A stretch of DNA of 64,000 nt from Bispira polyomma (Eukaryota): positions 52,204,001 through 52,268,000 of the forward strand of contig OZ287748.1 in assembly GCA_965649765.1 (NCBI GenBank), given 5' to 3'. Of this stretch, positions 16,289 through 51,668 are shown in pieces. Every line of letters begins with the position of its first letter. The first letter of the stretch is position 1. A program made the translations under genes and the position numbers. The notes beneath the pieces are model-generated. The model was not told where the DNA came from, ran no database searches, and worked only from the letters and a program-made list of their open reading frames with translations.

Positions 16289-16352
16289 AAGATATATGTG
16301 TTCATGGTAGTGTTACCACCATTCGCTGACTTAGTGTTGTGTTCTCTTTCAG

Positions 16353-16482
16353 CCCCGTACACGTGAGTTGGGTGCTCTACACAAGCTTGAGACTGACCAG
16401 GACAGTACTTACTCAGGTGATGGCTCTAACACAGATAGTGGCAAGGGACCTAGTGAGGAGGGGGACAACTCACACTCCCAGG
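16353..16482 (+). CDS. Pcdh: Protocadherin paralog A, internal cytoplasmic exon (phase 0 to 1)
   Basis: ttctctttcag acceptor and G|gtaagt donor; PRTRELGALHKLETDQDSTYSGDGSNTDSGKGPSEEGDNSHSQ matches Pcdh-B exon 2 in motif and phases. Confidence 0.88.
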
Positions 16483-17741
16483 GTAAGTCTCTAGATAGCC
16501 TACTTATGGCTTACACATCCTTCTATAAGATGGATTATCAGAATAATCTTTGAAGATACCTTTACTTTATAACTCTCACTGTTAGTGACATGGTTAAATA
16601 GTGTGGGGCCAATACTGTTTATTATTATCAATTAAAAAACATTCAGTTGTGTTGTTGGGGACAATTTGAGTATAAGACGTAAGACATCTCTCATACAAAG
16701 TTAATAAAATGTTACCATGTCACCTAGAGCATCGTTCATGGAAATTATTTACACTTTCTGGCCTAGAGCAAGTGCCACTATTTTTAGGCATATTTTCCAT
16801 TTAGCTTAAAATATTTATTTCAATAAGGGATTTAAAGATGAATTAGTGAAAGATTACTTTCCCTAAATAGTTGTAAAAGTGGATAGGCCAAATGTATTGA
16901 CGAAAGGAAGGCTTGCTAGACGATTGTTTATTTGTTGGGATAAGTTTCTCGTTTGATAGGCACACTCGTATGTACATACAGCATTGAATGTGAGGATAAG
17001 CATTTTATCCTGTAGAAATCCATCTGCAGCAGACAGTTGATCTAACAAAGATTGTGTAAAACACAACATTAGTGGTCAGTGTTTGTGGCGAGTACTGAAA
17101 CAGTATAACCACAGATCACACAGTCTGTATATCCACACTAGAAGTGATGATGTTAACGTAGTTTTACAAGACGTGTGTAGAGAAGCTCTCATTCCATTCA
17201 CTAAGCACTACATGATCGCCTTATTGGGACCTGGCTCATTATCCCTGACAATCCATTTTTATAGAACTTTGTGAGCACAAATATTCACCAAGTATCATAA
17301 TGCACTAGTTCACTATTTCAAAAAAAGTGAGTCTTAAATGATTCAGTATTACCACCATTGAAAGATGATCGCCAATAGATGTATGTATACCGCGACTGAG
17401 AACAACCTTCAAAGACAATGCCAATGTCCTATGAATGTTATACAGGTCTGCTAACTTTTGATGTAATATACCTTTGATTGATATATAATTATTGCGCTGG
17501 ACCATTAACAGAATGTATATGTAATAAAGTTTCATGATTTTCAGAGCCATTAAAAAATTTCTTTGCATTTTAGTTGCATTTTTAGTTACCTAAACAGACA
17601 TTAAATAAAGCAAAGTTTATAATTATAAGTTTCAAATAATCTTTAATACATTTTAATGAAACTCATTTTAATTTAATTACCAGACATTTGTTTATTTAAT
17701 TTGTTAAGTATTTTGTTTAAATACGCCTGATCTGCACAGCA

Positions 17742-18140
17742 CAAGAGGTGTTTATCATATTTTGACATCAGTTAAATGTTTAGAAAAACCTTGCTGCAAA
17801 AGTTCTCTAGAAAGGGATAAAAACCACAAGGATACAATATCTACGATTCAGAGGTTGACAGTCAATGTGAATGCACGAACTCAAAGCTTGGCATGCGTCT
17901 AGGGACAGTAAATAATATGGTAAAGAAGGTTTTAGAGGTAAATTGAGGAATAAATGTTCATCAACAGTGTCATAACCAGGTTTCTCTCAGATAGAAATGA
18001 TTTTACACCTGGTTCATGGTTTGGTGGGACTAACATAAGCTGTAAGGAAACATCAGATTGAAATGTGTTAAAAGTTATTTTCCAATTTTATACAAAAAGG
18101 TTATTACTCCATTTATCAAGAAAGATGTACCGAAATTGTT
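17742..18140 (+). mobile_element. Second Tc1/mariner-like remnant with left TIR, internally deleted
   Basis: CAAGAGGTGTTTATCATATTTTGACA TIR; about 17990-18140 aligns with 4200-4360. Confidence 0.7.
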
Positions 18141-18583
18141 ACCCCGGATTTTGTTGTTGTGCATAATGGACAGGACATTCAATTTTGATTTTATTTTGTT
18201 TAGGGCTTTTTACTTTTCGTTAAACCCAACAAAATTTTACACACTGTAAAGTGAATACTTAAACTAAGAATATTGTTAACCTTTACTAACAATTTCTTTC
18301 ACAAATCTTTACAAACTGACTTGGCAGTAATAAAGGCGATGCTCTATTGTATCGACTAGTGAGTGACAATTCTGACAGTATGTTATATGACATTTGAAAA
18401 CATTATCTCTACAGTTAATTATTCTGTGAAAAACTGTATAATGGAACTTTGAAAGTAAGGTTTCTATATAGTTTTAAATTGCAACATAAAAATTCAGGCC
18501 ACATATGATAACCCATAAGAATGGATAACTGCTGAGTTTGTGGTATTTTTAAGGCTTTACTTAAATTATTACCCTAAAATATA

Positions 18584-19050
18584 CCCTGGTCCCACCGGCA
18601 GTCACGTTAGGAGTCGTTTGAAAATTAATTTGCGTAGGTTTTGCGTGGTATTTGCGGGAGCTGACGTAATATACATAAACATACATAACCTGGCGTGAGG
18701 GTTGAGATGCAAGAAATTTATAATTTTAAACCGTTTGAAATTTGGACACGCAAGAGATGAAAAAGTATGACGTACTAAAACGTGGATATGCATCACAGTG
18801 TGTACATATGCGTCATTATGACGTCATTTTACATGTATTGACATACTCATACATGTACTTGGATGTGAACTTATGCATCCCCTGCGAGACTTTACAGCTT
18901 TTGACGTAATAATACATGAATTTTAACGTCTGTTGACGCCTTCAACGTGGAGAAAATCTTTAAATTCTAGTTTTGCATGACATTTTGCATCAAATATTTT
19001 ACAAGGCCATGTGTGACTTACATATTCTAACGTAAATCCGGTGGGACCGG
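18584..19050. mobile_element. Non-autonomous TIR element (CCC-terminus, possibly CMC/EnSpm-like)
   Basis: CCCTGGTCCCACCGG...CACGTTAG at left and CTAACGTAAATCCGGTGGGACC at right; related end in reverse orientation at 23170-23243. Confidence 0.65.
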
Positions 19051-19341
19051 CCCATAAATCTAGAAGTCGTTTATTATTGTCAATAGGTAAAGATCCTATT
19101 TGTTTCAACCATTGAAGTGAGGAAATCACAATTTTAAGTCTCAGATATTGTACCAATACACTTCTTAATGCTGTGTTATGCTATACCAGTACCAGTGTTC
19201 ATACCTTATTTTCTATGACTTTATAATAGTCCCAGGTTGTATTGTTAGTTCCATAATACAGTGATAAGTGCCATATTAATGTTATACCAATATACACCAG
19301 TGACTCTGCTAGTGTTGTATTATCCCTGTGTCACTACATCT

Positions 19342-19530
19342 GCCATTGTGGTCTAGTGGTAACACACTCCCTTTAGAATGCAGGGGACGTAGGTTCAATC
19401 CTAGCCTGGGCAACCATGTACAGGCAGATACAAAGCGGCTCGGATGACCACTTAAATTGGGATCCTCTGTCATTGGGTCCTGTCCCCAGTGGCAGGCTTA
19501 AGAACTTTGGGAATGTAAATAAATGGTCTT
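19342..19530 (+). mobile_element. Second family of tRNA-derived SINE, decayed
   Basis: A box TGGTCTAGTGG, B box GGTTCAATCC, followed by a non-tRNA core (GGATGACCACTTAAA...TTAAGAAC). Confidence 0.6.
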
Positions 19531-19716
19531 TATCAAGCCTCTCTGGTAGTCAATTAGCTGTTTGGTTACCAGATAGTGCCAGTTACATATACATGAGTAT
19601 AAATAACAATACACTACTGTGTCCATGTTGTGTAAATGTTAGATGCCATTGCCAGGTTTATTTTGTTACAAGATATACCAGTGTTCTATTAATTCTGTAC
19701 ATCTTTCTTTAACCAG

Positions 19717-20252
19717 GTGTTTGTACTGTGACTTTGACGCCAGTCTTAGAAGAAGATCAGAAGAATCATGATGTGATTTCCCACTCAAACTACAACACAT
19801 ACAGACATAACAGGCTTCACTACACTGAGCCACAGTATGGCTTCCATCGGTCCCTACCACACACTGTCATATCTGGAATTCCCAAATGTAAATGCAGATC
19901 ATGCAACACAAACAGATTTAGGACAGTCGTGTCTAAAACAAAAGACACTGTTTTCCCGGCAGACAGCAAAGAGGAGGTGAATACCCTGACCAGAGTGGAT
20001 AGAGTGGACAGCAGGACATCTCCTGACTGTCTCAAGTTGACCAGAGGTTGCAAAGCAGTGAGTTACCAGAAGGTCCCCGTGACGTATACAGGGAGCAGTC
20101 CACACCCCAGCCCTGGGAGAGGTGGAGAGGAGGAGGAGGGGGGATCTAGTACTACGTCTGGTAGCTATGTGGTAGACCACCACGATCTAAGTGACGTCAT
20201 GAATGACTCTCACTGGGACCTCAGTAACATCCCTCAACACTCGGTGGTGTGA
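19717..20252 (+). CDS. Pcdh: Protocadherin paralog A, terminal coding exon
   Basis: tttctttaaccag acceptor; phase-1 join (G+GT) stays in frame with the 174-aa ORF; acidic patch plus STTSGSY; ends HSVV* like Pcdh-B EDVV*. Confidence 0.8.
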
Positions 20253-20600
20253 TGTAACGGTGGTCTGATGTAACAGTGGATACAGTAAACTCCTAACTAA
20301 CATCCCTCAGTGATCTGATATAGCAGTAGATACAGTAAACTCCTAACTAACATCCCTCAGTAATCTGATATAACACTAGATACAGTAAACTCCTAACACC
20401 CCCAGTGATCTAATATAACACTAGATACAGTAAACTCCTAACTAACACCCCCCAGTGATCTAATATAACACTAGATACAGCAAACTCCTCATTAACATCA
20501 CGCAGTGGTTTGATATAACACTAGATACAGTAAACTCCTAACTAACATCCTTCTGTGATCTGATATAACAGTGGATACAGTGAACTCCTTACGAACATTT
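20225..20600. repeat. 50-bp tandem repeat at start of Pcdh-A 3' UTR (about 7 copies; a further copy at about 20803-20845)
   Basis: TAACATCCCTCAGTGATCTGATATAACACTAGATACAGTAAACTCCTAAC, period 50. Confidence 0.9.
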
Positions 20601-21177
20601 TGATACCAAATAACATTATATAAATTGAAAGGAAGTCTATTTTATTTGATCAACATTACCCTCCACTATTAACCAATCATATGTACTTATTAAACATACA
20701 CTACATAATAAAACTAAGAGGTGCGATGGGAGGTGCGATTGGAGATGACATATTCTGTTTCATTCCATTCCGATTCCATTCCAGCCTTTAGTACCTACCT
20801 CATTAACAACCCTCCGTGATCTGATATAACACAGGATACAGTAAACCGTGTTCATATCCCATCTTATCATTGTGTTCCTAATGAATGTGGTTATGCAAAT
20901 ACAATTACTGGAGATACATACTATGTTAGAATAGTATACTGAACAATGTGTGCAAGTGCATGTTCAATAGACAGTGTTAAACTTCAGTTTATTGCACTTT
21001 TTGATGATACAAGCATAGGAATTGTCAACAGAAAACATTTAAACATTTAAAACATCTATAAGTTGCATTTTAAATCTAAACTAGTAGAAACAGGATTTAT
21101 ATTAAACGTGTATGTAATTTATTACAGATGTAAACATTAATATATTTATTTAATTATGAGTTTAAATTGGAATAAGC

Positions 21178-21183
21178 AATAAA
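21178..21183 (+). terminator. Candidate polyadenylation signal for Pcdh-A
   Basis: AATAAA at the end of an AT-rich 3'-UTR-like stretch; another AATAAA at 20707. Confidence 0.35.
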
Positions 21184-21548
21184 TTTGATCAATTCACTGC
21201 ATACTTCCACCTGTTATGATTTACCATAGACATTTATTAGGATGGTTTGCCTCAAGTATTTAGTATGGAAAAATTTAGGGACACACAGTCAAGGCTCAGC
21301 CTGTGTTCCTGTGATGTTATTTAATCCGAGACAATCCAAAGTTATCCCACCGAATCCTTGTTTATATATGTTGATCACGCAAAGGTCTCACATATATTTG
21401 CAGTGCAAAAGGCATAAACCGATGAAAAAATTGACGTTAATGTACATGAAAATCTGTGCAAAGCCACAGCTTATACACATAGTTAGACGCACAAAAGGGC
21501 ACAGATTTACATGCTAATGTACATGAAAAAAGGCATTACTGCATATAA

Positions 21549-22918
21549 TGGTGCGTTCACATTGTCCAAGTTACATCCCGGCATCGCCCCGGCTAGGCGT
21601 TTACTCAAGACCTGAAGAACTTGGCTGATTGGGAGAGAAAAGACGGGCATATTCATTCATTTCATTTGCATATATTTGTATCCCTCGTTTATGACCCGTT
21701 TTAGCTTTGTTTTAGCCCCGTTTAGCCCCGTTTATGCCCAGTTTATGTAAAGTGATGGTTCCACATTTAAGTTCGATCGGCAAAATGGGCCCGACTTTAA
21801 AGTCGGGAAGGTCTGGGCAAAAAAATCAATAAAATTCGTTTTTAAGCGGGAAAATTAAAATGTGGGGCGACCTTCCCAATCGAACGGGACGCTGACCCCG
21901 ATTTTATTTGAACCTATATAGGATCAAACTTACTGGTAATAGGACCTGACGTATTGCCCTAGGATCTAAAGTGTCGCCAATAGGATCAGACGGATTCATA
22001 TCCCCGACCATAAGGATCGAACTTTTAAAAAGTCAAAGTTGGGACTGTTATGGTATAATATAGATGACAAAATGAGGTTATTGTAACTGAAATAAAAGAA
22101 ATAATACCTGTTTAGACCTCATTTTTGATGAAAGTTTGTTGTAAATATCAGCAAAAAATTTCATCGTTCGTGTACATGCACTACACCGGTAGTGGGTTTG
22201 ATGTCGCAAAGGTAAACAACTTTTAAACTGATTTCCATTATCAAGACTGACAAAATGGGCTTATATGTGTATCTTCATACATAAATTCTTCCCGACCTTC
22301 CAGACCACCCCGTTTTCGCCCCCCGACCGATCGACGGGCCAGTAATAGGACAGGTCTGGAGTGACATAAGACCTATCAGACAGAACGTATCGCCAATAGG
22401 ATCAAACTTATTCGCCATCGCCAATAGGATCAAACTTATTCGCCGAAGCCGACCGTCCCGTTTTTAGAGGTTTGGACCATTTTCAAAAAAGTTAACCATG
22501 CTTAACTTTCTTTCCGACCACCCCATTTTTGCCCCCTAACCACCCCGTACATGCCCTAGACCTCAAAGTCGGGAAGGTCAGGGACTAAATCTGATAGTGG
22601 AACCACCATTTAACGTTTTCTCCAGTTCTCTCCAGTTTAGGCAAGATCACACATGTTCCAAGCAGTTTAAGCATCATTTAGCCCCGTTTATGCCTCTTTT
22701 ATGCCGTTTTCTCGAGTTCTTTCAAGATGTGCTTTCACATCCGTCCACCCACAGAAGTTTTGAACATGTTCAAAATTTCCGGCTGTAGCTCCCGTTTTTG
22801 CCGTTCACCCCAATTCGCCCCAGTTCTGCCCCGTTTAAGCCCAGTTCTCAGACATTTGTTCAAGTCCTCACACGTTCTCAGAACGGGGACAGAGAACGTG
22901 GATAGTGTGAACCCCCCA
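21549..22918. mobile_element. Harbinger-type non-autonomous element A (contains nested element B)
   Basis: TIRs TGGTGCGTTCAC / GTGAACCCCCCA flanked by TAA and TTA; internal GCCCCGTTTA repeats on both sides of the nested insert. Confidence 0.75.
21751..22610 (+). mobile_element. Harbinger-type non-autonomous element B
   Basis: TIRs AGTGATGGTTCCAC / GTGGAACCACCATT with TAA duplication (21748-50, 22611-13); subtermini match the coding Harbinger at 29993-32957. Confidence 0.85.
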
Positions 22919-22949
22919 TTATCGCCTGTAAGAACAGGTTACAGCACTT

Positions 22950-23243
22950 TTATGTTTACGTAAAACCTAAATCTTACCTTGCGTCAATTTTCATCTTAAA
23001 CGGGGCTTGACAGCATTACTACACAAACTCTTGCACAGTCACGCATTCATTAAAATACGTCACCTCTCACAACAGTTACGCAAATATTGACCTTGAATTA
23101 TGCTGCATTCATCATCTTTTGCGTAACCTATTGTCAAGTTATGTACTTTCTCGTCTAATACGTTAACCCCTGCAAACTTTATGCAAAACCTACACAAATT
23201 TAGTTTTAAATGACATCCAGCATCATGGCCAGTGGGACGAGGG
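22950..23243 (-). mobile_element. End of a CCC-terminus TIR element related to 18584-19050
   Basis: Reverse complement of 23170-23243 aligns with 18584-18658. Confidence 0.6.
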
Positions 23244-23954: not shown

Positions 23955-24211
23955 GAGGGCCACGGTGGCCTAGTGGTTAGCAAGCATTGCGCTTCACAAT
24001 CACTGGTCTCTCACCTCTGGGCGGCGTGAGTTCCAATCCCGTCGATGCCTATGTGGGAAAGGTGGTAGTTCCTTACTGTGGGCCGCTGGTTTCTCTGCAG
24101 AACCTTGACCGACTGTATGCAGTGTTTCCTCCAGCGTTTTCAACTACCCGTCCCAATATAACCTACTAAAAGGTACTAGAGTGGACGTTAAATATCCAAA
24201 TTCAAATTCAA
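23955..24211 (+). mobile_element. Full-length tRNA-derived SINE with 14-bp TSD
   Basis: A and B boxes, (CAAATT)n tail, TSD ATCACTACCTACCA at 23941-23954 and 24212-24225. Confidence 0.93.
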
Positions 24212-27895: not shown

Positions 27896-27902
27896 ATCTT
27901 AA

Positions 27903-28493: not shown

Positions 28494-28494
28494 C

Positions 28495-29990
28495 TCAAAC
28501 CAGCCCAAATGGCTAACTACCTGTCGGCCATTAAGGCCCAATTAATCATCCATAATGTGCCAGTACAGGCTTTTAGTAATCCCAGGATAGCCTACCATCA
28601 GAAGGCCGCCTTATTGGCCACACCATTGCATGTCAAACTTAAGAAGGTCATCGATATCAGTACTCTAAAGATATTGTGTCTATCCGTCAGGGCCCTGTGG
28701 GCTGCTTTAGCTATAACACCTCCGGGCAACAACTCACACTTGTTTCAATACAAACTGAATCAGACATGGCTTTCGCTTACAGATACCAGGGTCTGAGGGC
28801 ATTTCAAAATTGTTCCTAAAAAATTAAGCCTTGGAAACTCAGGGCTTGCCTTCCATGCCTTCCGACGATCAGGTGCCAACTTTACTTTTAATCACAATGT
28901 CAGTATCCAAAACATTCAGAAACACGGCACCTGGATGTCCAACTGTATGTGGCGGGATGTCATTGATTCTGTTGATGCCGGTCAGCCGGTAGCTAATACT
29001 TTTAAACAGCACCTATAACGTGCCACCTTTCCCTTATCTCCCACACTCTTGTTGATTGTGTTCTGAAGTTACAAAATTAAATATTGTCGCTTGTATTCTT
29101 GCTTAAGTCCTCTTGTAAAGTTAAATAATTTATGGTAACGTTAAGTTACCATAAAAAAACTAGAATAAATGTTAAACCTCATGTTACCATAAAAACAGTG
29201 GAATAAATATTGAACTGCATATGACAGTGTTGCTCATTTGACCTCTACCTAACCCTGACCCCACTTCACTGGTACACATAGAACTGTAGTGGGTGATGCC
29301 TTAGCAGCACCACTCTTAGTTCTGGTACCAGTCTAATGTGGTTGAAATAAACCACTAGGGGTCATGGGTGCAAGTATATAAAGCATTGGTGCCTGTATCA
29401 GCACCATTGTTGTAAATTTTTGTTAAGAGGATAGAGTATTTTTACAACTCACCCTTACCCACCCGGTGATTGTCTTTTAGCTTCCACATTATTGTACCAC
29501 CAGCCAAGGTGGCACAATGGTTAGTCATAACCTGGTTCTTCCACTGGTATGGTCTTTGTTAATTCTGTTCCATCACAGCACATTCTAGTAATCTTCATAT
29601 ATGTTACTGTTCTTGTGTTTCCTCGGTCAGTGGGCAGGGTGCTTCTAGTTAGTGGGATAGGCATTCACCTATCCAGGTATCCAGTATATCCTTTAATACA
29701 ATTAACAAGTTTTGTTAAAACTGAAATGTTGAGCTTGTGTTCTCAGTTATAAATTTAACCTTGTTGCTTGTATTGTTGCTTGCATTCTCAGTTGGAAATT
29801 AAATCTTGTTGCTTGTGTTCTGAAGTTACAAAATTAAATATTGTCGCTTGTATTGTTGCTTGCGTTATCAGTAACAACTTCAATGTTGTGGCTTGTTTCT
29901 TTCAAAGTTAAATTAATTTTAACTTTCTATCCATGCATATATATAACTAGTTAAAAAATTGTTGTTGCTTGTGTTCTTTGAAAGTTAAGT
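28495..29990 (+). mobile_element. Ngaro-like tyrosine-recombinase retrotransposon 3' fragment
   Basis: YR remnant (ANYLSAIK, SVRAL, FHAFRRSGA, IQKHGTWMS) to about 29018, then noncoding region with a TATA box at about 29376 and direct repeats at about 29057 and 29814. Confidence 0.7.
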
Positions 29991-30051
29991 GAATAGGATC
30001 TGATATATTGCCCTAGGATCGAACGTATCGTCAATAGGATCTGACGGATTA

Positions 30052-30877
30052 GTTCATCCCACAGGTCTGTAAGGCCATCATCCAGGAATACGAGACTGAA
30101 AATCTAGCCTGCCCAACCACCCCCACTGACTGGCTGAAACTGGAGGAAGTCCATAGAACCCGATGGAATGTGCTTCATGCTGTAGGCTCTGTTGATGGAA
30201 AGCATGTGGCCATAAAGAAACCCCCCAAGGCTGGGAGTGAAATTTACAACTACAAGGGCTACAACTCAATAGTCCTCTTAGCCCTGGTTGATGCTGATTA
30301 CTGATTCATTTGGATGGACGTTGCTGCAGTGGTTCCTGTTCAGATGCTCAAATTTTCAACCACTCAGATTGAAGATGGATCCATCGGCCTTCCCAGACCA
30401 GCATCACTGTTTGAGGGATCTCGACGAGATGTTGGCTACTTTCTGCTGGGGGACGACGCCTTCGCTCTGAAAACCTGGTTAATGAAGCCCTATTCAAGGA
30501 GAAACCTCACCAACCACGAAAGGATATGTAATTACCGGATATCAAGGAGAAGTAGGGTGGTTAAGAATACCTTCGAGATATTGGTCAGCAGGTTCCGACT
30601 TCTGCTGACCATCATGCAACAGCATCCTTTGGTTGCATCAAACCTAACTTTAACCTGTGTGATACTGCATAACATTTTAAGAAGCCGGTGTGGCATCGCA
30701 GCCCTGGAGAATCCCAACCCTCAAGATGACCACCTGAGCCTGAGGAGAACCTGATGGTGGATCAACCAGAAAAAGCAATCAGAAACGCCACCACAGGGGC
30801 AAAACAGCAAAAGGGACACACTGATGGACTACTTCATGAATGAGGGGGCAGTCCCTTGGCAAAATGAGCGAATATGA
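30052..30877 (+). pseudogene. Harbinger (HARBI1-like) DDE transposase, 5'-deleted and disrupted
   Basis: VDGKHVAIKKP, YNYKGYNSIVLLALVDADY, LGDDAFAL..WLMKPY, NYRISR..RVV.NTF, CVILHN, VPWQ. Confidence 0.9.
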
Positions 30878-33223: not shown

Positions 33224-33647
33224 AATCACAGGACTTAGATGTTTGTCAATTATTTTGGGTTTTTGCCATTCTTTTGTCATAATAAATCAGTGTTATAAAA
33301 TATATACATGTTCAGGTATATTGTAGGATTTGAATTTATCTTAAGTTGCTACACAATCAGTGTAATGACACAAACTGTCCAAGAAATCAGATACCTTACA
33401 AATAGCTGTCTCCTACAAACATGACCCAACTCGCTATATGGACTTTTCTCAATTTCCATCAAGTCATCAAATTGGGTAGAAATATTGTCTGGATGTTTTT
33501 CTGCTGCACTGGTTGCTGTACGCTTGGTTTGGAAAGCTGATATTTGACATAGCACAGTTTTAATGGCTGGCTGTTCCAGTAGAATCAGCATCCTATAAAA
33601 CAGACCATTCTGTAAGTGTGTACTTCAGTGGAATTTAGAACTGGCAT

Positions 33648-34765: not shown

Positions 34766-35062
34766 TGACGTCCAGTGTCGCCACCTAACGAGTAGTATGG
34801 ACTACATAGGAGTAACTAATCTGATTGGTTCTAGCCAGCAGATGGAACTTGCCTGTGAGTGATAAGAAATGACGGTTCCATGACTTTTTCCTCGCGAGGG
34901 GTTTCCAAAGAAAAAATAACTAGTGGCGCAGATCTGCAGTTTATGGGCAACTGGCCGAGATTTGTAGTGTTGTGTTTGGTGTGGATGTGTTAGATGTATG
35001 TAGGTATTACTGCTCAGTGGTGCTCATTACACTGATTACAGGATACTAACTTTATTAACAAG
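34766..35062 (+). promoter_or_regulatory. Putative promoter and non-coding first exon of Pcdh-B
   Basis: CpG-containing unique patch with TGACGT, CGCCACCTA, reverse CCAAT (34824-28), CTCGCGAG (34891-98) and a strong AAG|GTGAGT donor at 35063. Confidence 0.35.
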
Positions 35063-35614
35063 GTGAGTTATACCACTTTCATGAAATCTAGACTGTTCAT
35101 ACACAGTTGTAAGGATGTCACACATAAGGTAGTAAACTACTTCACTCACAATCACAAACTCTACAAAAAATGTTCATCTTCATTTTACTTAATGTATTGA
35201 TTTTACAGCAAAATAAGATATTTGATGAGCTTGCAGTGAAGATGTTTTCACATTAGTCACTTGAAGTATTGACTATGTGACACCTTGTCAGTTGCAATAA
35301 ATTACAATAAAAATACACCTCCCTACACACAGTCTTTCACTGAGGTCTAAGGCATTCCCGGGCAAATCGCACGTCACTTTTGTGAAATCATTGTTGTATT
35401 TGCAGAGACTCCAGTTTAAGAGAGCATTACTTTGGATGGGTGTTAATATGAGAGGTATCTTAGTGGTCACTGGACTTGTTAACCCTATATTACACCGAGG
35501 AGTTTTAGTGAGGTATTGTCAAGGAAGCGTGGAATATAAAACATCAGATATATGTATCAAATGGAGTGCACATTAATTGAGAAGTGAGGGAGGCAAAGAC
35601 GGGTGATAGTTACC

Positions 35615-38487: not shown

Positions 38488-40455
38488 TGTTAGTTAGGTG
38501 TTCTAATTGATAAATATGATTCTAATATGAGTTCCACTACCTTGTTAAAATATAGGAATGTCTACCTGGTGTACGTTAAGGATGTGTAACCTTGGATACA
38601 GCAGTGACTTCAGACTCCAGTAAGATGGATTTCTTCTTACACAGTTTGTGCTGAACTTGTTTTCTATATATAGGACTGTTTACATACAGTCCTGAATTCA
38701 ACCCCTCTGGGAGTGTGAGGCCTCAACACAAAAAGAACCATAAGGCCAGATAGATTGTCAATAAGGCCAGCTGGCAGTTTTCACATATTTACAACTCCTA
38801 CACACTCTCAGGATTGTTGCTTTGGAAGAAACTATTATAACAAGAATATTATAAAACTAAGAATGTAACTCATTCGGTAGCAGAATTTTTAACTCAAAAA
38901 TACCCAAAATATATTCAAAAATATATTAAAATTGATTATTTTAATAAAATGTATAATTCATTAAGCTGGACAGAATTTAAAACTAATATTTAACCCTTAA
39001 CCTGGTGGAGACTTGCTGCTAAATGTATATGGAGATTGCCTGGTTTGGTTTTTATAATACACAACAGAACACATATAAATCACTTACTGAATACAAGAAA
39101 TATAACTTTCATTTGCAGGTTTGTTACTGATCAGTTGTTTTGTTGACATTTTGAAACTATAACAGATGTAAACCATACTACAGTGGTAGGGAGCTCACTA
39201 AACTCTGTGGACTTGAATAATGTCACCAATTATAGTAACTGTGCAACAATCAGATAAAATCAAAGTGTGTGGGAGGCATTCATGTAATTGTACAATTTAC
39301 AAGTCATTTTCTATATTTAAAATGTCTGACTTATGTATATGGTGATGTGTTATACACATTATATCCCTTCTAGGTATCTATTGTACCTACTAAAAGTCTG
39401 TAGAAGTCACTGTAATAAAACTATGAAATTTAGTCTTGTTTTCCCTTTGAAATCCCACAAAGTACTATGAGTGAGACAAGGCCCTTTAACTCCAAGTTGG
39501 CTTTGTTTTTACACTTTAAGGCTGACAGTTTGCACTTGGAGTGACTGCTGGGGTGAGAGTAGGTTTAGATTTAAGAGGTAAATGTCAGTTTGTCAGAGCT
39601 CTGATGGTTTGACTAGTGTTTGGGGTAGTCACTAGCCAACAACTACCAGGTGACTAGGGAAGAAGCCGGCTTGTTCTGGACCAACCATTCCCTATTGAAC
39701 CATCCATTCCGTGACACTGCGATCTCTCTGTTACTCGTGGGAATCTAGCTAAAATGGATACATGCCACTCAGATAAATCTATCAGCTTCTTTTTTCTTCA
39801 AGTGAAAAGCCCCCATTTCCTGGAGCATTATAGATTGCACAGTGTATGATAGGTTGTAATAAGTGAGTTTCCCCGAGTAGGGGGATATCTTACTCGCTTG
39901 AATGCCAACATTAAAAATAGCCTCACATCAATGAGTCTTTTTACAGCCACAAAAAAATGTCCATTTGGTAAAAACATTTTTTGTATTAGGCTATCGAATA
40001 GGCATTGGTTTAAAGTTTCGAGTATAAAGGTTGACTTGTTTGTTGAGGGACTGTGTACAGACACTATTTCACTGATTTCTTGCTGTACTTTCAGAATGCT
40101 TAATCCCATGACCTGGGGACATGCAGCAGGAGAGGCAGTGGTGTCCACAGGTAACTGAAAATAGGCACTAGATATGTCAGTAATTCATCAAATCATGGCA
40201 TCACTCCTGCTTAGGTTGAACAAGTCCAGCGGAGAGCTGACATCAAACAAGGAGATGATTAATTAAACAACATGTGCCATCTTTCTTCCCCCAAAGCTCA
40301 TCGAAAAGGATATATACTTCATGTAATAAGGACAGAAATCTCCTCATGTGTCTATAAAACTGGACTTAGTGTCAATTAGTCCTTCCTCAAACCTGTATAT
40401 ACTGTGTGTGAACAATGCACTAACTACAAAGCTGATTTAACACCTTACCAGGGAT

Positions 40456-43221
40456 ATGGGGTGTGACGTACTTCTCTGCTGCGTTATTGTATTGGTAAGC
40501 ATTCCCTCTGTATTCACTGAGGCATTAGCCCCAGCTCCTGTCACATACACAATACAAGAAGAACTGGATGCAGGAACAAAAGTAGGTCAGCTCTCCGTTG
40601 ATACCCAGTTAAATAAGAAGTATCCACCTCAGGTGTTGAACAAGCTCCGATTCCGTTACTTGTCCCTTCCAGTACTGACATTTACCCTTGAACTGACTAC
40701 TGGAGCAATTATTACGGGTGAGCGAATTGATCGGGAGGAGCTTTGCCCTATGCAGGAGGTGTGTGAAGTGAAGTTTGATGTGGCTGTGCAGCCTGTGAAC
40801 TACTTCCAGATCATCAAGGTGACCATTGTAGTGGAGGATATCAATGACAACTGGCCTCACTTCTCTGAGCCAAGAATCACACATGATATCTTGGAGTCTG
40901 CATCACTGGGGACCACACTCTCCTTACCCTCAGCTATAGATACTGACAGCCCAATCTATGGCATTCAGAGGTATGAAGTAGTGGATGACACTGGCAAATT
41001 TGGCTTAAAGATCACAGACAAATTGGATGGATCAACCGATGTCAAATTGATTCTTGATAAGAAACTGGACCGAGAAATGACAGAAGAATATAAAGTGCGA
41101 GTGATAGCTTTTGATGGAGGTGGATTCACGGGTTATGTTGATATTCTAATTTCTGTGCTAGATGCTAATGATTACAACCCAATGTTTAACAATAATACGT
41201 ATGAAGTCACTATTTCTGAAGATGTACCACTGCACACTACAATCCTACATATTAAAGCATGGGATCCAGATATTGGCGAAAATGGTCGAATTTGTTATGG
41301 CCTCTCTGCAAGAACAAGAACAAAGTATGGCCATTTGTTCTCCATTCATGAAGTGAGTGGGGATATCACTGTGATCGGAGAGGTAGACTTTGAGGAACAC
41401 CAAGTGTTTCATCTTGGAGTGACTGCTAAAGACATGGGACCTGGGTCTCTTCCCGCAGATGCCACAGTAGTGATCTATGTCAAGGATGAAAATGACAACC
41501 CACCAGAGATCACCATTAATACACTGACTGACTCCACCTCCTCCTTGGCGGAAGTCATGGAGGAATCTGCAGTTGGCACTTTTGTGGCACATGTCACTGT
41601 TGTGGATAAAGACAGTGGCTTGAATGGTAAATTTAGCTGTTTCCTCAATGACAATCACTTCAAGCTGGAACAGGTTTACGATAAGGAGTACCAGATAGTA
41701 ACTGCTCTTACTTTAGACAGAGAGACCAGAGACTCTTACGACATACTAGTAGAGTGTACAGATGAAGGATTGAAAAGCCAGACTTCTATTAGGAACCTTC
41801 TTGTGGTTGTAGGGGATAAAAATGATAACAACCCACAGTTTGACAGGGCTCAATATACTGCCAACATAATTGAAAATAATTATGAAGGTACTGCCATTTT
41901 GCAAGTGAATGCCACTGACAAGGATCTCGGCAGGAACGCAGATATCCGTTATGTCCTTCCACCAGAGGTTAAAAGGGTTTTCAACTTGGATTCAACTAAA
42001 GGAACTTTAACTGCAGCAATAAAGTTTGACAAAGAAGAACATCCCCAAATTAGATTTAAGGTAATAGCTGAAGACCACGGTGAACCATGCAAGACAGGTA
42101 CAGCTGTGGTTTTAATTACAGTACAGGATATTAATGACAATGCACCTGAGTTCGAAAAGAATCATTACACCTTTAGTGTAGCAGAAAATGAACCACTTGG
42201 CATAAGTGTAGACACTGTAACTGCACAGGATAAAGATTACGATATTCCAAATCGTAATTTTACATATTTCATTTCGAAACATGAAAGTGATGCTGGGAGT
42301 CTGGAAATGTTTCACCTAGACCATACAAATGGACAGATAACAACCAAAATATCATTAAACAGAGAAACGCATGACGTCTATCATCTGGTTGTTTTGGCTG
42401 TAGACAAAGGAGAACCAAAGCGCACAGGTAGTGCTCGAGTCACTATAATAGTCACAGATGTTAATGACCACTTTCCATATTTTGTTTTTCCAAACAACAC
42501 TAACCGCAGTGTCCAGGTGTCAAGTATGGCTCAGGTTGGTTATCCTATCACAAAAGTGAAAGCTCTTGATCTTGACAGTGGCATCAATGCTGAGCTGAGG
42601 TATAGGATTACAAGTGGTAACTCAGACCATCTCTTCAAACTAGAAAAAAATAGTGGCACTTTGAGTACAGCAAGAAGGTTACATAAAACACTAAACAGTA
42701 TTTATATATTAGAAATTACAGTTAGTGACAACGGTATGCCTAGTAAGACTGCTAAATCTTCACTTGAGGTCTACATTAACAGAACATTGCACCAACCAGT
42801 GCCAGATGGTCATAACAATAGCATAGAAGGCTTCTTCTCGGGCTATAACCTTTATATTGTGATAGGGCTTGCAGCGGCCTCTGCTTTAATAGCTGTCATA
42901 CTCATTGTTGCAATCATCTTTATCCACCGTAGGAGCAGGAGAGACAAGGATGAAGGCTCTTACAACTGTAGACAGGAAGAAGCAAAGAAAATTCTCCAAA
43001 ATCAACATACTGACGGTTCTGTAGCTAGAAACAGTCCCAAGCTTATAAATGGTGGGGCTACAATAATAGGCAACTCTGGTGTAAATCACTACTCTGTCAC
43101 ACCAACAAATAGCAGCAAGCTCTCCAAGAAGGAAGTGAGCTTCACCCTAGAAAGCGGCCCAGAGCAGCAGTCAGCGCACACACTGCCCAGACACAGGGCC
43201 GTGGAGGATCACGTCACCAAT
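40456..43221 (+). CDS. Pcdh: Protocadherin paralog B exon 1: signal peptide, 7 cadherin repeats, TM, proximal cytoplasmic region
   Basis: DRE and DxNDN-type motifs, EC1 CX5C (CPMQEVC), TM LYIVIGL...AIIFI, YNCR motif; AAT|gtaagt phase-0 donor at 43222 inside the 928-aa ORF. Confidence 0.96.
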
Positions 43222-45949
43222 GTAAGTTCTGTCTCTTTCTAGAATGTATTACTAGGTAATGTAAACCTGAATACTAGTTATTGATCGAACTCAAAAATGT
43301 ATGGAGGATTTTGAGGCTGACACTTATCTCCCCTAAACCAGAGCTCATCTTAAAGCATTTTGAGCGAGGCAAATAAATGCACTACTTCCTTACAAGTTAC
43401 ATGACATGTAGTAAAACATGTAGAACTAAGAATCAAATATTGTTGACTGTCTTTCTTCCTTACCTTTTTAATCAAATTTATCACATATTTAATGACATTG
43501 TGTGTTTGCCATTAAAATGGAAACATTCTAGTACGAAAAGGGGGCACCCGTCTAATTTTAACAACTGTAAACAACTTTTGCAACAAAATATCAAAATTAA
43601 GATATTCTGATTCTCCATAAGGCAACACTCCTTTTAATGGTTTATACCGATGGCATTGATAAAGTATAGACCAAATTATTGAAGACAATTAGTAACATTA
43701 GCGAAGGCATGTGTCCATTTCCACCCGTCCCTACACATATCACCAACTTCTTCCCACCATTAATCAGCCACATCTGGTGAAGCACAGCCAGGTAAACTAT
43801 CAGAGTCACTTTACAATGCCATTCAGGCGTCATATTCTTTGTTTCAATTGAAAGCTGTTTTCATTTGTGACCATTGATTTAACAAGCATCTTTTACAGCT
43901 CTGGTTTCCACAGCATATTAATTCTGAGCACAACTGCTACCCTAAGAAGGGACGCAGTCCTTAGAAAAACAAGTCCACAGAAAAATCCCTTCCTCTGGTG
44001 TGCTTTTACAGAATAAGTAACGTTCAGAGTAGTAGGCCAGATACGTTTGTGTTAAAAATGAGACCTCTATGAAGACACACACAGTTAATGTGATCTTAGT
44101 TAAAGGTCTACTGTATCTGGATATTTATGACTTGTTTTTATGTTCCTGTGAAAGTATTGATGTATTACAAGCATGTTTAATGTCTCTGTGCTCAGCATTA
44201 TTCTCTACAAGTGTTCATCAAGCTGGAGGAATAACTGGAATCTATATCATTACTATGTGGTGGTATTTAACTACGAATACTCTGATATTGCCCTGTAGGA
44301 GATAACTTGCATGAATAAGGCGTGTTAAAAATTCAAAATACATTACAAAAATATCATGGACTTGACACAAAAACTCATTTCCTCCATTTGTTTTGGATGA
44401 CCTATTTTCCATGCCCATATATATACTCGATTTTGGGGGTTTCTGGTTCTTTAAATGCAGCTTAACGAGTGCATCAATTCAAATATTTGGTGTATGAACT
44501 TGTTTTCCTTACTTACAAGTCAGTATAATGTGTATACTTGTGAGTAGGCCACCAAACCTGCATCTAACCCACCTCCTTACCCACCAATACTATACACAAT
44601 ACCTGCCAGTTCCCCAACCACATACCCCTACAAACTGGGCTATGGTAATCACAGCCATCAGTGAGTTAAGGCTCCAGTTTCTACACTCACTTCTCACTTA
44701 CAGTATGACTGCAGTTAGCATGCTAAGCTACCTTTGTCAACGAGCAAAACAAGGCCAGGGTAACTTTCATCCTGATTTTACATTCCATTTTTAACATTAC
44801 TTGGAGGCGCTGCCACTTATATATGTGACAAATGTTGTGCTATCAAAGTATCAGCCTGATAGTAATATGTTTTATAAGCGATGCAACCCACGGCATCATA
44901 GGTTTTATACCCTTTTAACATAGTATATTATGAATATGAAATATTTAAAAAGTCAACTATTGCTGGAACAACTGTTGTTAACACATATAACATTGGCTTA
45001 CTTTATCAAATGCGAGCTGTTTTGTGTAAAATGAGTGACACCGCATTTCTTTGATAACATGACTTTCTTTGAGTCTTAATGAGGTACACTGAAATTCAAC
45101 TTAGAGAAAATTGGTATATGGTAAGTGTAAACATTGTCAGTATTATAAGTACTGAACTTTGACATTATCAACAACAAATGAAAGATCTCACTGAAAAGCA
45201 CCATATCGAGGTCAGTTTGGTGTGTATTCCAACAGTTCCAATCATGTCTTCTTTGGAATAGCGTGGGTCATCCCTCAAGTGGGTGGAGTTAGGGGTTCTT
45301 ATAAAAGACCTTCGTACAAAAATAGCGACAGTATATGAAAAAAAAAATCTGAATGAAAACAATATCATCGCTTTCACAAAAATAAACAATGAAGTTACCA
45401 TTACAGCTTCAAAGTTAGCAACTTTTAGTATAATGAAATAAAAATCACAGTTGAAAAAAAGTATCTAGACAGTGAAAAACCAAATTATCTCTAAGCACAA
45501 TATAATCAACAACGGCTTTTTGATGAGTTGTTTATCTGGATTTTATGCACTGAACGTAGCTGAAGTATTGCTAATCTAATGCTTCCAGGGCTAACTCATC
45601 ATCCTGGCTTTGAGAAACTTGGTAATTTTCTGCAAGCTTATGGCCTGTAATCATTAATTTATACCTCGCATGATTGTAAGAGCCTGTAGTTCTTCTAGAG
45701 CCTGTAAGATCCTGTAGTTCTGTACAACACGGGTTTACTGGGTATAGGGGTCATAAAGAGATGAATTGCATGGATTGTGTTGGAGGATGGGATCTAAAAA
45801 CCAAACAATTAATCTGCCTGATAATCCCTCCATAGAATCACCTGTAGGAAGACCAGTAATAGTTTCTTTGTCCGTTTATAATTTAGGGGTTGTAAATCAA
45901 AGGTATCTCGAGAGTTAGTAACATGGCCAGAGGCTATCTGATAATATGC

Positions 45950-46615
45950 CGACACAGTGTGTATCTCTGGTGTCTAAAGACAATATGTCCACATAGTGTG
46001 TATCTGGGGTGTCTAAAGACAATATGTCCATACAGTGTGTATCTGGGGTGTCTAAAGACAATATGTCCACATAGTGTGTATCTGTGGTGTCTAAAGACAA
46101 TATGTCCACACAGTGTGTATCTGGGGTGTCTAAAGACAATATGTCCACATAGTGTATATCTGTGGTGTCTAAAGACAATATGTCCACACAGTGTGTATCT
46201 GTGGTGTCTAAAGACAATATGTCTACACAGTTTGTATCTGGGGTGTCTAAAGACAATATGTCGACACAGTTTGTATCTGGGGTGTCTATAGCCATGATGT
46301 ATACACAGTGTGTATCTGGGGTGTCTAAAGACAATATATCCACACAGTGTGTATCTGGGGTGTCTAAAGACAATATGTCTACACAGTTTGTATCTGGAGT
46401 GTCTAAAGACAATATGTCGACACAGTTTGTATCTGGGGTGTCTAAAGACAATATGTCCACACAGTTTGTATCTGGGTTGTGTGAATACATTATGTACACA
46501 CAGTGTGTGTCTGGGGTGTCTAGAGACAATATGTCCACACAGTTTGTATTTGGGTTGTGTAAAGACATTATGTACACACAGTGTGTATCGGAGGTGTCTA
46601 AAGACAATGTGTATA
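45950..46615. repeat. Intronic minisatellite, 39-bp unit, about 17 copies
   Basis: CCACACAGTGTGTATCTGGGGTGTCTAAAGACAATATGT tandem. Confidence 0.95.
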
Positions 46616-49600
46616 ACAAATTTTACAAAATCTTACTATTCTATTTGAGGTCCAAAGCTTCATTTAATTTGGGACTATATTGAGAAGTGTTTTTATTTTG
46701 GAGGTGCCTTTCATGTATTTATGTTGGGGCTGGGTGTGAGTGTAAACCATTACTGGGTACAAACTATCATAACAGAACTCAGAAGGCAGAGCCTGACTTT
46801 AACCCTTCATCTCCTTTACTCCCTCATAACAATGTTACGCTGTCTAAAGCCCATCGAGAAGCTGGCAGTAAATGGCTGTGGTCTGCTCTGATTTAGCTTC
46901 CAAATCTATCTCTAAAGGTTAGGGTATTACTTCAAGCTTTCCACACACTAACATAGGGGTCCTGTATGAATTCTGAGTTTACCAGAATTATATAGATGTC
47001 CTCTTTCCAGCTAGATTGCTAACGCCTAACAATATCAGTGATAGTGGGAAAAAATGCTAAACAGTGTGCAATAAAAGAGCAATCAGCAATATTTGGTGCA
47101 TATCCTTGTTCCTTAAATGTAAGAGAGTATTTTGATAAGCTACAGAACTTTTTTGTGGTAGGAACACATTGGGGATGTAGTTGTGTTATAGGCTGATTGC
47201 TGTGTAACAAAAGCTCCAGATGTCCACTGTGTATGTCAAGCTTAACATGATTACAGGCTTCCCCAAACTATGAATCAGCTATATCCTCAACTCTTAGGCT
47301 ATTACTGCCAAGTCTGCTGAACTGTTGAAGAATTAGAAAATAGAATATATTCTATCTATAAGTCATTGCTAGGAAAGTCCAACGGGTTTATCGGTGTATG
47401 ACAAAAATGATTTAATTAAACATGTGTAAGAAGTTTAGAGATTCTAAGATGCTCACATTCTAAACAGGATAATCCAATGAGCAAAATATTAATGTGGGGT
47501 ACTGCTAGGGATTTCTACAAAAGATAACACTGAAACATCCCTTTAACTGTTAGACATTGTCAGACTCTATCACAAACAGAACATCTTCTATCACCTTGTT
47601 AAGCCAGCCATGTCTAGAAGTCTTTCAGAAAAAATTGACTTGCAGGGACAGGCTAATAATATTTTTCTAAATGCTGCAGAGCTATGTATTGAGAACAAAG
47701 ATTCTCTCCGGAATAGCCAGCGGAGGTGCTTAAAGAATGGTCTACAGTCTACAGCCATTTCCCTTCATTATATTGACATTTGATGAAATTTCCCCGCATT
47801 GCCAGGCCATTTCGTTGAGAGCACTCAATGTGTGTGCTGTGTCTCTTCCTATGCAGTAGAGCCCCACTCCACTAGAACTGGCCGCCTTTAATTAGACCAC
47901 AGTCGTGTGCCTGGTCTTTATCAATTAGGAATTTTTCAAAGGCTTTCAGTTGTCTTATTGCATGACCAAAGTCATATTTCATCGTTTTTACAGTTCTCTT
48001 CATGGAGGCAGGGTGTGAAAGCAGCATTAGACGGCTTCTAGGGAGTAATTATAAGCCACCCAGCCCCTGTCTTGTTTTCTATAAACCTCAGAAATATGGC
48101 CAGCTACTGAAAACGGGTTTTGTTCCAGCTCAAAGACATATGAAATAGCAGTGAGGGGAATTGTAAAGAACAGTTGTTAATAGAGGGTGTGACATTTTAA
48201 TACACTGATTTATAGCTGTTGATTCTATTAACAGAAGCTTATCTTGCCTGTGGGAGTTTTATCATCATATTAAATCATGTCTGATCAAAGCAGATCTTGC
48301 AGGGGTTGGTTTATTGGGAGTGTGGGCTGTTTTACTGTAGGGGTGTGTGTCAGAGGTTGTCTCAAGGCCTCATTACTCCGCCATGACTTGCACCAACCAT
48401 ATTATCCACACCAATAACTAGACTAACATCAGTATAATGATGTGTCAGCTATAATTGAATTTTTAAGGGTCTGTTGACGGACATTAGTATAATTAAAAAG
48501 CAAACACTAACTTACAATTATGCGGAATACCTACAGGCTTAACTCTAAGTGGGATTGATCAAATAACCTTGATTAAAAACTTCATCTAATATTGATTTGT
48601 TACACCTCAAGTTTTTTTCTCATATCTGCCAGTAATTCGTTTGGATAAAATAAGATATTCTGGTTTTGCTTTGCAATATAATACTGCTATTCAAGCCCAA
48701 TTTATTTATAATTATAAATAGAAATATTTTATTTGGGAATATACATGCATAAACTTTACACATTGCATGTGACAAGACGTGCCAGTATTAAGGTATTGTA
48801 TCTGTTGATCACACAACTGCAACTTACCAGTGATATCCGTCTACCTTAGAAGTCCTATATTCGTCTTTATACATCCTCTTTGGCATTCTCAAGGTTTCAA
48901 GGAGTTGGCACTTTGCCCTCGATGGGTAGATCTTGCTTTCATGTATACCTTAGAACTTACTCCATCTTCATCAGCGGTAATTTGGTGACTTTTCCCCAAA
49001 AAAGTTCCCTTCCTAGTCAGATGTTTCTTGTGCTATGATGGATTACTGTGCACCCCCTTATATCATAAATAAGAGGGATAAACTGGCAGCAGAGACATGC
49101 CACCTGCTTAGGTTACTGCTTCTATTAGGGTATGTGATTGTATAGCTACTACAACAAACAACTTCTCTACTCTTTCTTGATTTACAGAGTTTGAAATGAC
49201 ACGTTTATAAAATACCAAACCTATATGCTTGAAGGCTAATAGTGAGCTAGATTTACTATGTGACAGTGTCTCAAATGTACCCTTTCCTCCCTGACTTTAG
49301 TGATCCCATGTTTCTGTTAAGAGTGTCTTTGGCTAGTGCTCCTTCAATCTCCCCTTTTTCCGCTCTCTCTGATTTCAAAATCACTCGCCAGTCGTATAAC
49401 TTCTAATTAAGATCAATTATTTACATCCCTGGCATTTCTCCACCTGCCAGTAAAACAATCAGAAGAAGCTTCTGTTCGTGGTCCAGTGTCACTCATACCA
49501 TTAGCACAGACTTTTTAAAGCATGATTTTTAATTCTCTAAAACTCTACTAATTTTGGGGGTATTTAAATTGTTTGCATAACTTTATCATCTTAACCAAAT

Positions 49601-49789
49601 CGATTAGCCAAATAAACAAAATAAGTGTGCAGATAACATATTGTTGTTGAAATACTGAAATGTATTTAATATATTTTGTGTGTGTGTGAAAATGACAAAA
49701 ATCCTGGTAAATTTTTTTATTTGTGTTTACCCTCTAAAATATAAGTGTACAATACAGGCCTCTCCTCAGTATAACTGTATGCATTGCAG

Positions 49790-49925
49790 ACCTACCATCC
49801 ACTGGTGGGCAGTTTACGACAGGATGACTGTGACAGCGGGTCCTACTCTGGGGATGGTTCCTTCCCAGACAGTGGAAAAGGCACTAGTGAAGAAGGTGAC
49901 TACAGCAGTCCACCTCACCCTCCTA
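49790..49925 (+). CDS. Pcdh: Protocadherin paralog B exon 2 (phase 0 to 1)
   Basis: ttgcag acceptor, A|gttagt donor; TYHPLVGSLRQDDCDSGSYSGDGSFPDSGKGTSEEGDYSSPPHPP in frame with exon 1; not shown in the ORF track. Confidence 0.88.
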
Positions 49926-49939
49926 GTTAGTAATAGATT

Positions 49940-50730
49940 TGTATACCTCTCACCAGTGTATAGTACCTTCTGTATGTGTGTACCTCTCACCGGTGTATAG
50001 TACCTTCTGTATGTGTATACCCCTCGCCAGTGTATTGTACCGTCTCTATGTGTATACCCCTCACCAGTGTATAGTACCTTCTGTATCTGTATACCCCTCA
50101 CCAGTATATAGTACCTTCTGTATGTGTATACCCCTCACCAGTCTATAGTACCTTCTGTATGTGTATACCCCTCACCAGTGTATAGTACCTTCTGTATGTG
50201 TATACCCCTCACCAGTCTATAGTACCTTCTGTATGTGTATACCCCTCACCAGTGTATAGTACCTTCTGTATGTGTATACCCCTCACCAGTCCTTAGTACC
50301 TTCTGTATGTGTATACCCCTCACCAGTGTATAGTACCTTCTGTATGTGTATACCCCTCACCAGTCTATAGTACCTTCTGTATGTGTATACCCCTCACCAG
50401 TGTATAATACCTTCTGTATGTGTATACCTCTCACCAGTGTATAGTACCTTCTGTATGTGTATACCCCTCACCAGTCCACAGTACCTTCTGTATGTGTATA
50501 CCCCTCACCAGTCCATTGTACCTTCTGTATGTGTATACCCCTCACCAGTGTATAGTACCTTCTGTATGTGTATACCCCTTACCAGTCCATAGTACCGTCT
50601 GTATGTGTATACCCCTCACCAGTCCATAGTACCGTCTGTATGTGTATACCCCTCACCTGTCCATAGTACCTTCTGTATGTGTATACCCCTCACCAGTTTA
50701 TAGTACCTTCTGTATGTGTATACCCCTCAT
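49940..50730. repeat. Intronic minisatellite, 37-bp unit, about 21 copies
   Basis: TGTATACCCCTCACCAGTGTATAGTACCTTCTGTATG tandem starting about 15 bp after the exon-2 donor. Confidence 0.95.
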
Positions 50731-51231
50731 CGCCTCATTATCTTGAAATACCTCCTAGTCGTTGTCCCTTCCACATTATCTTTTCAAATGTCTGATGGGC
50801 CAGACATTGCTGGTATGAGTGAATGTGATCGATTCAATGAGGTGATTTTTTACTGTACGAGTGCTGGAGATGTTTTTTACCATGGAATCTGCCATGGTTA
50901 GTGACGTCTCTACTGAGCACAAATTCTGCTCATTACTGGCTAGCAAGTACTTCAAATCTGTAATTGCTTTTCCAGCACTAAATAAATGCCCAGCAACCGC
51001 CACTTTAGGAAGAAGAAGTGCAATTTGTCTTGCTGGGCACTCAGCAGAAATTACTTTTCGATATCAAAGTTAATTTGTTTTGAATACACTACATCATGGC
51101 ACAACAGATGAACATGTTATCTTCATATTTGTTTACAACTAGAAGCTAATATAATCCATCGTGATTAATGTTGAACAAAAGCACGGAAGTTCAGAATTGT
51201 TATACATTTATAAAGTGATGTCTTTTGACAG

Positions 51232-51668
51232 GTTGTCGCCAGCTGTCCAGTGGGGAGCCACTGTTACAGAATACCAACAATCCAGCAAGCAGCTACAATA
51301 AGAGGAAGCCAGAGTTCCGGACGTTTAGTCCAGTGAATACCTTGTCAGGAGAGGAGAGGAAGGGTAGTAGTGGCAGTCTGGACAGTGACTCCCTACACCC
51401 CCTCATAGAGGCAGCAGTCAGAGCCAACTACACTGGACACAGCACCCTGCCTCTTCGCTCTTACTCCACAGACCGCTCTCATAACACCCTACCCCACCAG
51501 AGACAGATAAAGCCACCAGTTACACACAGAACACCAGCCAACAGTCTTACAAACAGGGAGGATCATACTGCTAACAGCTACCAACCTGGATTTGATGTGG
51601 ATCCAGATGAACTGAATTACACTATTAATGAGTTCATGCTAAGTAACTGTAAGGAAGATGTCGTATAG
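51232..51668 (+). CDS. Pcdh: Protocadherin paralog B terminal exon
   Basis: tcttttgacag acceptor; phase-1 join (A+GT) in frame with the 147-aa ORF; S/T/P-rich tail ending EDVV*. Confidence 0.85.

Follow-up and report, generated by a model that had tools for sequence, protein, structure and literature searches.

In the alpha and gamma protocadherin clusters of vertebrates, many similar variable exons, each with six extracellular cadherin (EC) repeats, are spliced to shared constant exons (PMC7811963). Whether an annelid does something comparable is the question raised by a stretch of 64,000 nucleotides from the genome of Bispira polyomma (assembly GCA_965649765.1, contig OZ287748.1, here C1, positions 52204001-52268000), which is called the window below and which carries coding exons of two neighbouring protocadherin genes on the same strand, Pcdh-A and Pcdh-B. 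An initial annotation had seen in them a lineage-specific tandem cluster with duplicated cytoplasmic exon modules, in which the tail exons of Pcdh-A might serve several upstream large exons and matching splice phases might permit splicing from one gene into the other. Our analysis leads to a different answer: Pcdh-A and Pcdh-B are very probably independent, complete genes that go back to an old whole-gene duplication, each possessing head and tail exons of its own.

The exons concerned, together with those of a further gene, C, are the following (window positions, unless C1 is given):

C1 ~52198.6k-52201365, plus strand: Pcdh-A large exon 1 (seven EC repeats, transmembrane segment (TM) and juxtamembrane part), outside the window
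1-16352, plus strand: 3' part of Pcdh-A intron 1, the whole of which measures ~19.0 kb
16353-16482, plus strand: Pcdh-A exon 2, 130 nt, phase 0 in and phase 1 out, bounded by CAG and GTAAGT, with a DSG motif resembling conserved motif 1 (CM1)
19717-20252, plus strand: Pcdh-A last coding exon, phase 1 in, C-terminus TTSGSYVVD..DL...HSVV-stop
40456-43221, plus strand: Pcdh-B exon 1, 2766 nt, 922 codons, phase-0 donor AAT/GTAAGT
49790-49925, plus strand: Pcdh-B exon 2, 136 nt, phase 0 in and phase 1 out, donor GTTAGT, with a CM1-like DSG motif
51232-51668, plus strand: Pcdh-B last coding exon, with a WIRS-like FRTF (WIRS, WAVE-interacting receptor sequence) and the C-terminus VD..EL...IN....EDVV-stop
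C1 52318678, 52347574 and 52355020, plus strand: large exon, DSG exon and last exon of gene C

It had been noticed that no ectodomain exon occurs in the 16 kb ahead of the Pcdh-A tail exons. This is true of the window, but only because the window edge cuts exon 1 off: the Pcdh-A ectodomain is matched at C1 52198720-52201161 on the plus strand, and its exon ends, with the phase-0 donor AAG/GTAATG, 2636 nt to the left of window base 1. Exactly one same-strand ectodomain exon precedes the Pcdh-A tail, which tells against the proposal that this tail serves several. The next protocadherin upstream of Pcdh-A lies 97 kb off, at C1 52.10 Mb, on the minus strand. A search with an EC1 profile made from this genome's genes, in which 134 of 134 candidates were scored, finds four N-termini in C1 52.0-52.4 Mb, and profile searches with the Pfam EC1 and with the last repeat and TM agree with this count; the four genes, D(-), A(+), B(+) and C(+), together span less than 260 kb. 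In Pcdh-A, Pcdh-B and gene C alike the numbers of large exons, DSG exons and last exons are 1:1:1, the tail of gene C, like other tails outside the window, being known by position only. The initial annotation had held that exon sharing would not survive a strict 1:1 ratio of large exons to cytoplasmic modules on the flanking scaffold with no chimeric reads; the genomic half of this, the strict ratio, is what was found for A, B and C, and for these genes exon sharing is refuted at the genomic level.

That the exons are real follows from their conservation in a second species (species 2; ENA contig ERZ22147071 ctg30628l), which keeps acceptors, donors, phases and stops. The orthologues there, P0122 for Pcdh-A (69% identical) and P0001 for Pcdh-B (77%), have the same order and orientation as in B. 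polyomma. All five splice junctions are retained, as is the exon-1 donor of Pcdh-A (AAG/GTATTG in species 2) and that of Pcdh-B. The small exons, whose splice sites are kept, are 86% (Pcdh-A) and 85% (Pcdh-B) identical, the last exons 70% (Pcdh-A) and 73% (Pcdh-B, with phase and stop kept). The exon coordinates and the phases (0 into the small exon, 1 into the last) given in the initial annotation are all confirmed, and so is its observation that ectodomain and TM of Pcdh-B are contained in one exon of ~2.77 kb.

This exon encodes a signal peptide, seven EC repeats, a TM and a juxtamembrane tail with KKEVSF, an RVxF-type site that is kept in many homologues. Pfam recognizes six Cadherin domains and one Cadherin_2 in Pcdh-B. 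Six DxNDxxP linkers, which correspond to seven EC repeats, and a TM at 801-815 are found in Pcdh-A, Pcdh-B and gene C, and length and linker spacing fit seven EC repeats in every intact gene examined. The matches among solved structures are mostly protocadherins. Judged by these sequence features (seven EC repeats, a protocadherin-type EC1, one TM and a non-classical tail), Pcdh-A and Pcdh-B are members of the protocadherin family.

The tails are less alike than the term duplicated module suggests. The small exons of the two genes are indeed paralogous: they share YSGDGS..DSGKG.SEEGD, as had been reported, and are 52% identical over the exon. The last exons, however, do not align (E=2.1) except for a weak C-terminal VD..[DE]L...[IM]N....VV, so the shared part amounts to only ~25 residues. 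The Pcdh-A exon 2 with its DSG motif is more similar to the DSG stretch of Pcd11x from the annelid Platynereis (A0A2H5BFB8; 62% identity) than to its counterpart in the neighbour Pcdh-B (52%). In full-length Platynereis Pcd11x, KKEVSF is followed by the DSG motif, then by LQTF, which is WIRS-like, and at the C-terminus by TTTSGSYVVD..DL...VV, similar to that of Pcdh-A; of these elements, the DSG motif, the C-terminal one and a site of RVxF type recur in proteins of oyster, abalone and scallop. Since these Platynereis and mollusc proteins carry ectodomain and matching tail motifs in single chains, the Pcdh-A exons are to be assigned to a cadherin gene, and the paralogy to Pcdh-B that had been proposed for them holds. 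Moreover, the DSG motif, present in both groups, is pan-lophotrochozoan and dates back at least to the split between annelids and molluscs. RVxF and WIRS-like sites are absent from Pcdh-A; in Pcdh-B both are kept and the TTTSGSY part is eroded. The FRTF of Pcdh-B, a four-letter pattern of a kind that also arises by chance, is kept in species 2.

The DSG motif is probably the CM1 of vertebrate delta-protocadherins. A profile built on seven motifs from spiralians singles out DSGRGDSEAGDS in catshark PCDH18a with a score that none of 1000 shuffles reached, although this score is only 6 bits and concerns one species. The stretch sits just ahead of CM2 and WIRS, and from this position we take it to be probably CM1. 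The C-terminal motif matches catshark PCDH18a weakly (17 of 1000 shuffles), and the spiralian motif profile gave no signal in pika PCDH11X. CM2 (CxxECxxxGHSDxCWMP) was found in the catshark control and is absent from the exons of A and B and from Platynereis Pcd11x. The Pfam tail families PF08374 and PF16492 gave only sub-threshold matches in the TM region and none on the DSG exons, an Atlas feature search with one tail returned no usable match, and no annelid report of these tail motifs was found in the literature covered, which falls short of key papers. Studies of octopus detected no vertebrate-like tail motifs (PMC6339937). We lean towards the view that annelid and mollusc tails have kept the delta-type RVxF, CM1-like and WIRS-like motifs reported missing there; the tails of the two neighbours would then retain them with complementary losses, in contrast to octopus (PMC6339937).

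How old are the two genes? Pcdh-B and gene C are 44% identical, which is the highest value between any two of these genes in the genome; A and B are 39% and A and C 34% identical. In species 2 the orthologues show 69-77% identity, as compared with at most 44% between paralogues, so that the duplications predate the split from this species. In a FastTree phylogeny B and C are sisters, with A apart, and the genes of this genome are interleaved with the proteins of other species (13 label changes). The tree has long branches and was used solely for these two points. The best named matches among invertebrates are the annelids Platynereis, Paralvinella and Capitella. On these comparisons the protocadherin family is the result of old duplication and not a young cluster, within which B and C may be a family-level duplicate.

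A young, lineage-specific tandem expansion resembling the sub-arrays of coleoid cephalopods is therefore unlikely, although it is the alternative that survives best. It would fit that all 30 protocadherin N-termini of the genome fall within C1 9.4-83.6 Mb, with 21 on the plus and 9 on the minus strand, and that some local groups form clades (B and C; four genes at 57.25-57.57 Mb); it does not fit the interleaving with proteins of other species or the separate, more similar orthologues in species 2, and 30 genes are far fewer than the 168-288 of coleoids (PMC9068888). Of the tandem cluster in the initial annotation there remains a small tandem group of protocadherins, whereas its lineage-specific character is borne out neither by the identities of 34-44% nor by the phylogeny.

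Full gene duplications, and not shared exons, underlie the protocadherin diversity of coleoids (PMC9068888); nearly all of their genes sit on a single chromosome, and other spiralians possess few (PMC9068888, PMC9795677). Coleoids have 150-288 protocadherins (PMC9068888, PMC9795677, PMC10084454), with ectodomain and TM in large exons (PMC10084454). In whole-gene duplication, multi-exon genes, a large ectodomain and TM exon and a spread over tens of Mb of one chromosome the genes of B. polyomma are like these arrays. They are unlike them in being ~30 old genes, at most 44% identical, on mixed strands and in groups of two to six, where coleoid arrays comprise 20-40 close paralogues. The single-chromosome linkage of the family may predate the cephalopod expansion.

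The one-to-one relation of heads and tails can be followed along C1. With the best DSG profile, 13 of 13 unselected matches lie no more than 50 kb behind a same-strand ectodomain, for which the chance is ~0.8% per random site. The pooled searches yield 17 DSG exons, each behind a different gene and never two behind one, and 18 of the 30 genes have a tail marker of their own (17 DSG exons and one last-exon match only). The DNA pattern search alone, with 134 matches against 176 in its control, did not rise above background and served for position only. Several points tell against complete, independent genes throughout. Three of the 17 DSG assignments are pattern matches chosen by position, and some profile matches are weak, with E above 0.1. 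In 12 of the 30 genes no tail marker was detected, and five of these (at 57.25, 57.38, 57.43, 61.49 and 64.38 Mb) are followed on the same strand by a neighbour no more than 150 kb away. At the locus itself, 29 kb of Pcdh-A intron 1 in species 2 lie outside the sequence seen, and the three sequencing runs found to contain this DNA behave as DNA, not as RNA: over 16330-20270 they gave contigs that agree with the assembly and have no splice joints. Downstream of the other seven marker-less genes the first 1.9 Mb contain no protocadherin on the same strand, so that sharing is implausible there and the markers must miss diverged tails.

It should be noted, however, that neighbours on the same strand lacking a detected tail are where sharing would have to be sought: 57.25/57.38/57.43/57.57 Mb, 61.49 before 61.60 Mb and 64.38 before 64.29 Mb. 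That some annelid ectodomain exons share or swap tails, either by read-through from A to B or from B to C or by true sharing elsewhere on C1, we regard as quite improbable; if true, it would amount to an invertebrate variable/constant protocadherin system, convergent on the vertebrate mechanism. At 57.25-57.57 Mb four same-strand large exons (L010, L008, L020 and L014) form one clade; for none of them was a DSG or terminal-motif match found, and the reading frame of L020 ends with a poor TM. In paralogues at C1 32.36, 32.41, 32.47, 61.86, 62.49, 63.45 and 64.25-64.29 Mb the ectodomain, unlike that of A, B and C, is split over at least two frames, for which intron gain or breaks are candidate explanations.

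For independent genes, the expected course of expression is simple. Each gene would be its own transcription unit with its own promoter, and its transcript would be spliced from the large exon with ectodomain and TM to the DSG exon and from there to the last exon. The product would be a calcium-dependent, homophilic recognition protein with seven EC repeats, a distinct ectodomain and its own tail, which would signal via short linear motifs that a delta-type ancestor passed on: a docking site of RVxF type for protein phosphatase 1 (PP1), the CM1-like DSG motif, a WIRS-like site for the WAVE complex and the C-terminal motif with VV at its end. Diversity would come from ~30 divergent genes over 74 Mb of one chromosome.

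For the upstream end of Pcdh-B there is a candidate promoter or 5' untranslated region of its own:

39665-39962, plus strand: non-coding block, conserved (88%), 0.5 kb ahead of the Pcdh-B ATG

Compatible phases on the same strand had suggested cross-gene splicing. By regulated read-through, the Pcdh-A ectodomain would take the B tail, with differences in PP1- and WAVE-type signalling, or B the C tail. The tails of A and B do differ in motifs, and the gene order is kept in species 2. But the matching phases go back to intron positions handed down to the paralogues: in most of those on C1, even where tens of Mb or a change of strand separate them, the best post-TM donor is in phase 0, so that phase identity needs no special explanation. 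Moreover, a stop and, after the last exon, AATAAA candidates (20707 and 21178) belong to Pcdh-A itself, Pcdh-B has its own conserved upstream block, and a chimera would have to skip both the last exon of Pcdh-A and the 2.8-kb exon 1 of Pcdh-B. There is accordingly little to be said for such splicing, and we consider it very improbable. Least credible of all is a vertebrate-like variable/constant cluster with several large exons sharing the two tail exons of Pcdh-A, which the phase-0 donor of a single ectodomain and TM exon and the long intron before Pcdh-A exon 2 might recall, since only one same-strand large exon precedes that tail, B and C have tails of their own, and one large exon is typical of non-clustered delta genes too (PMC9040349).

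With vertebrate clustered Pcdh-alpha and -gamma the B. polyomma genes have in common the large exon with ectodomain, TM and juxtamembrane tail and the same-strand neighbours, but they differ in the lack of shared constant exons, in having seven rather than six EC repeats, in low paralogue similarity and in mixed orientation. In non-clustered Pcdh10, exon 1 encodes ectodomain and TM, while small exons further on encode CM1 and CM2 (PMC9040349), and a large exon 1 with small tail exons is a design that the B. polyomma genes share with non-clustered delta-protocadherins of vertebrates (delta1 PCDH11X, delta2 PCDH10/18; PMC9040349). Seven EC repeats and an RVxF site ahead of the DSG motif recall delta1, namely PCDH11X, and a DSG stretch followed later by a WIRS-like site recalls catshark PCDH18a. 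The counterpart of delta1 CM3 (RRVTF, PP1 docking) would be the RVxF-type KKEVSF in B, with none in A. In contrast to delta2 (six EC repeats and WIRS) there are seven EC repeats here, with the WIRS-like FRTF in B and none in A, and in contrast to delta-protocadherins there is no CM2, the genes are linked on one chromosome, and the profile match to the delta1 tail is not significant.

The closest likeness is to spiralian protocadherins with seven EC repeats and a TM near residue 800 (Platynereis Pcd11x; RefSeq proteins of Haliotis, Saccostrea and Mizuhopecten; gene models of Capitella and Paralvinella), whose tails have in common KKEVSF or KKVTF, DSG[KR]G.S[ED]E, an S/T-F WIRS-like site and C-terminal TTTSGSY..D..[DE]L...VV. 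Unlike these relatives, A is without RVxF and WIRS-like sites, and in B the C-terminal motif is eroded and the tail is shorter. With their own tail exons and with annelid and mollusc proteins of matching tail motifs as closest relatives, A and B are, as far as sequence can tell, spiralian full-gene-duplication protocadherins. They provide an annelid example, with ~30 genes on one chromosome, of a known spiralian pattern and in this respect are a matter of routine annotation.

Conserved non-coding sequence is unusually abundant around and inside Pcdh-B:

45475-45841, 47671-48613, 48959-49110, 49368-49534, 50818-51096, 54834-55352, 33437-33552 and 34776-35381: non-coding blocks, conserved at 73-85% relative to species 2

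These blocks are not coding and are candidate enhancers or splicing elements. Extra coding exons in the Pcdh-B introns were considered and rejected, the conserved blocks containing stops and frame-breaking indels in both species. Read-through of the donor after Pcdh-B exon 1 (43222-43242) would meet a stop after 6 codons and give a short isoform as in vertebrate Pcdh10; the peptide is not conserved in species 2, where it has 21 codons. A minisatellite of 37-bp units (49940-50729) begins 15 nt past Pcdh-B exon 2 and was not found in the species-2 flank. Another, of 54-bp units (15425-16287), ends 65 nt before Pcdh-A exon 2. Intron 2 of Pcdh-A contains a high-copy element of ~480 bp with terminal inverted repeats (18580-19058), resembling miniature inverted-repeat transposable elements, over which read depth rises up to ~2500 times that of the flanks, and another short high-copy repeat lies near 19370-19494.

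In the rest of the window, tblastn with 30 paralogous ectodomains found no other cadherin-coding sequence. A hidden ectodomain exon or pseudo-exon was rejected on this negative result, and a run of N at 12411-12540 (130 nt) is too short for an ectodomain exon. An element of the long interspersed nuclear element type (58864-61802) has endonuclease and reverse transcriptase frames and is flanked by a satellite of 18-bp units. Decayed retroelement pieces at 400-2600 and 28494-28793 have reverse transcriptase and RNase H matches and, by eye, integrase- or recombinase-like stretches; they are possibly DIRS-type. Finally, a Harbinger/PIF-type (DDE_Tnp_4) transposase fragment lies at 30051-30754, and species 2 has a related copy in the equivalent intergenic region, there on the other strand.

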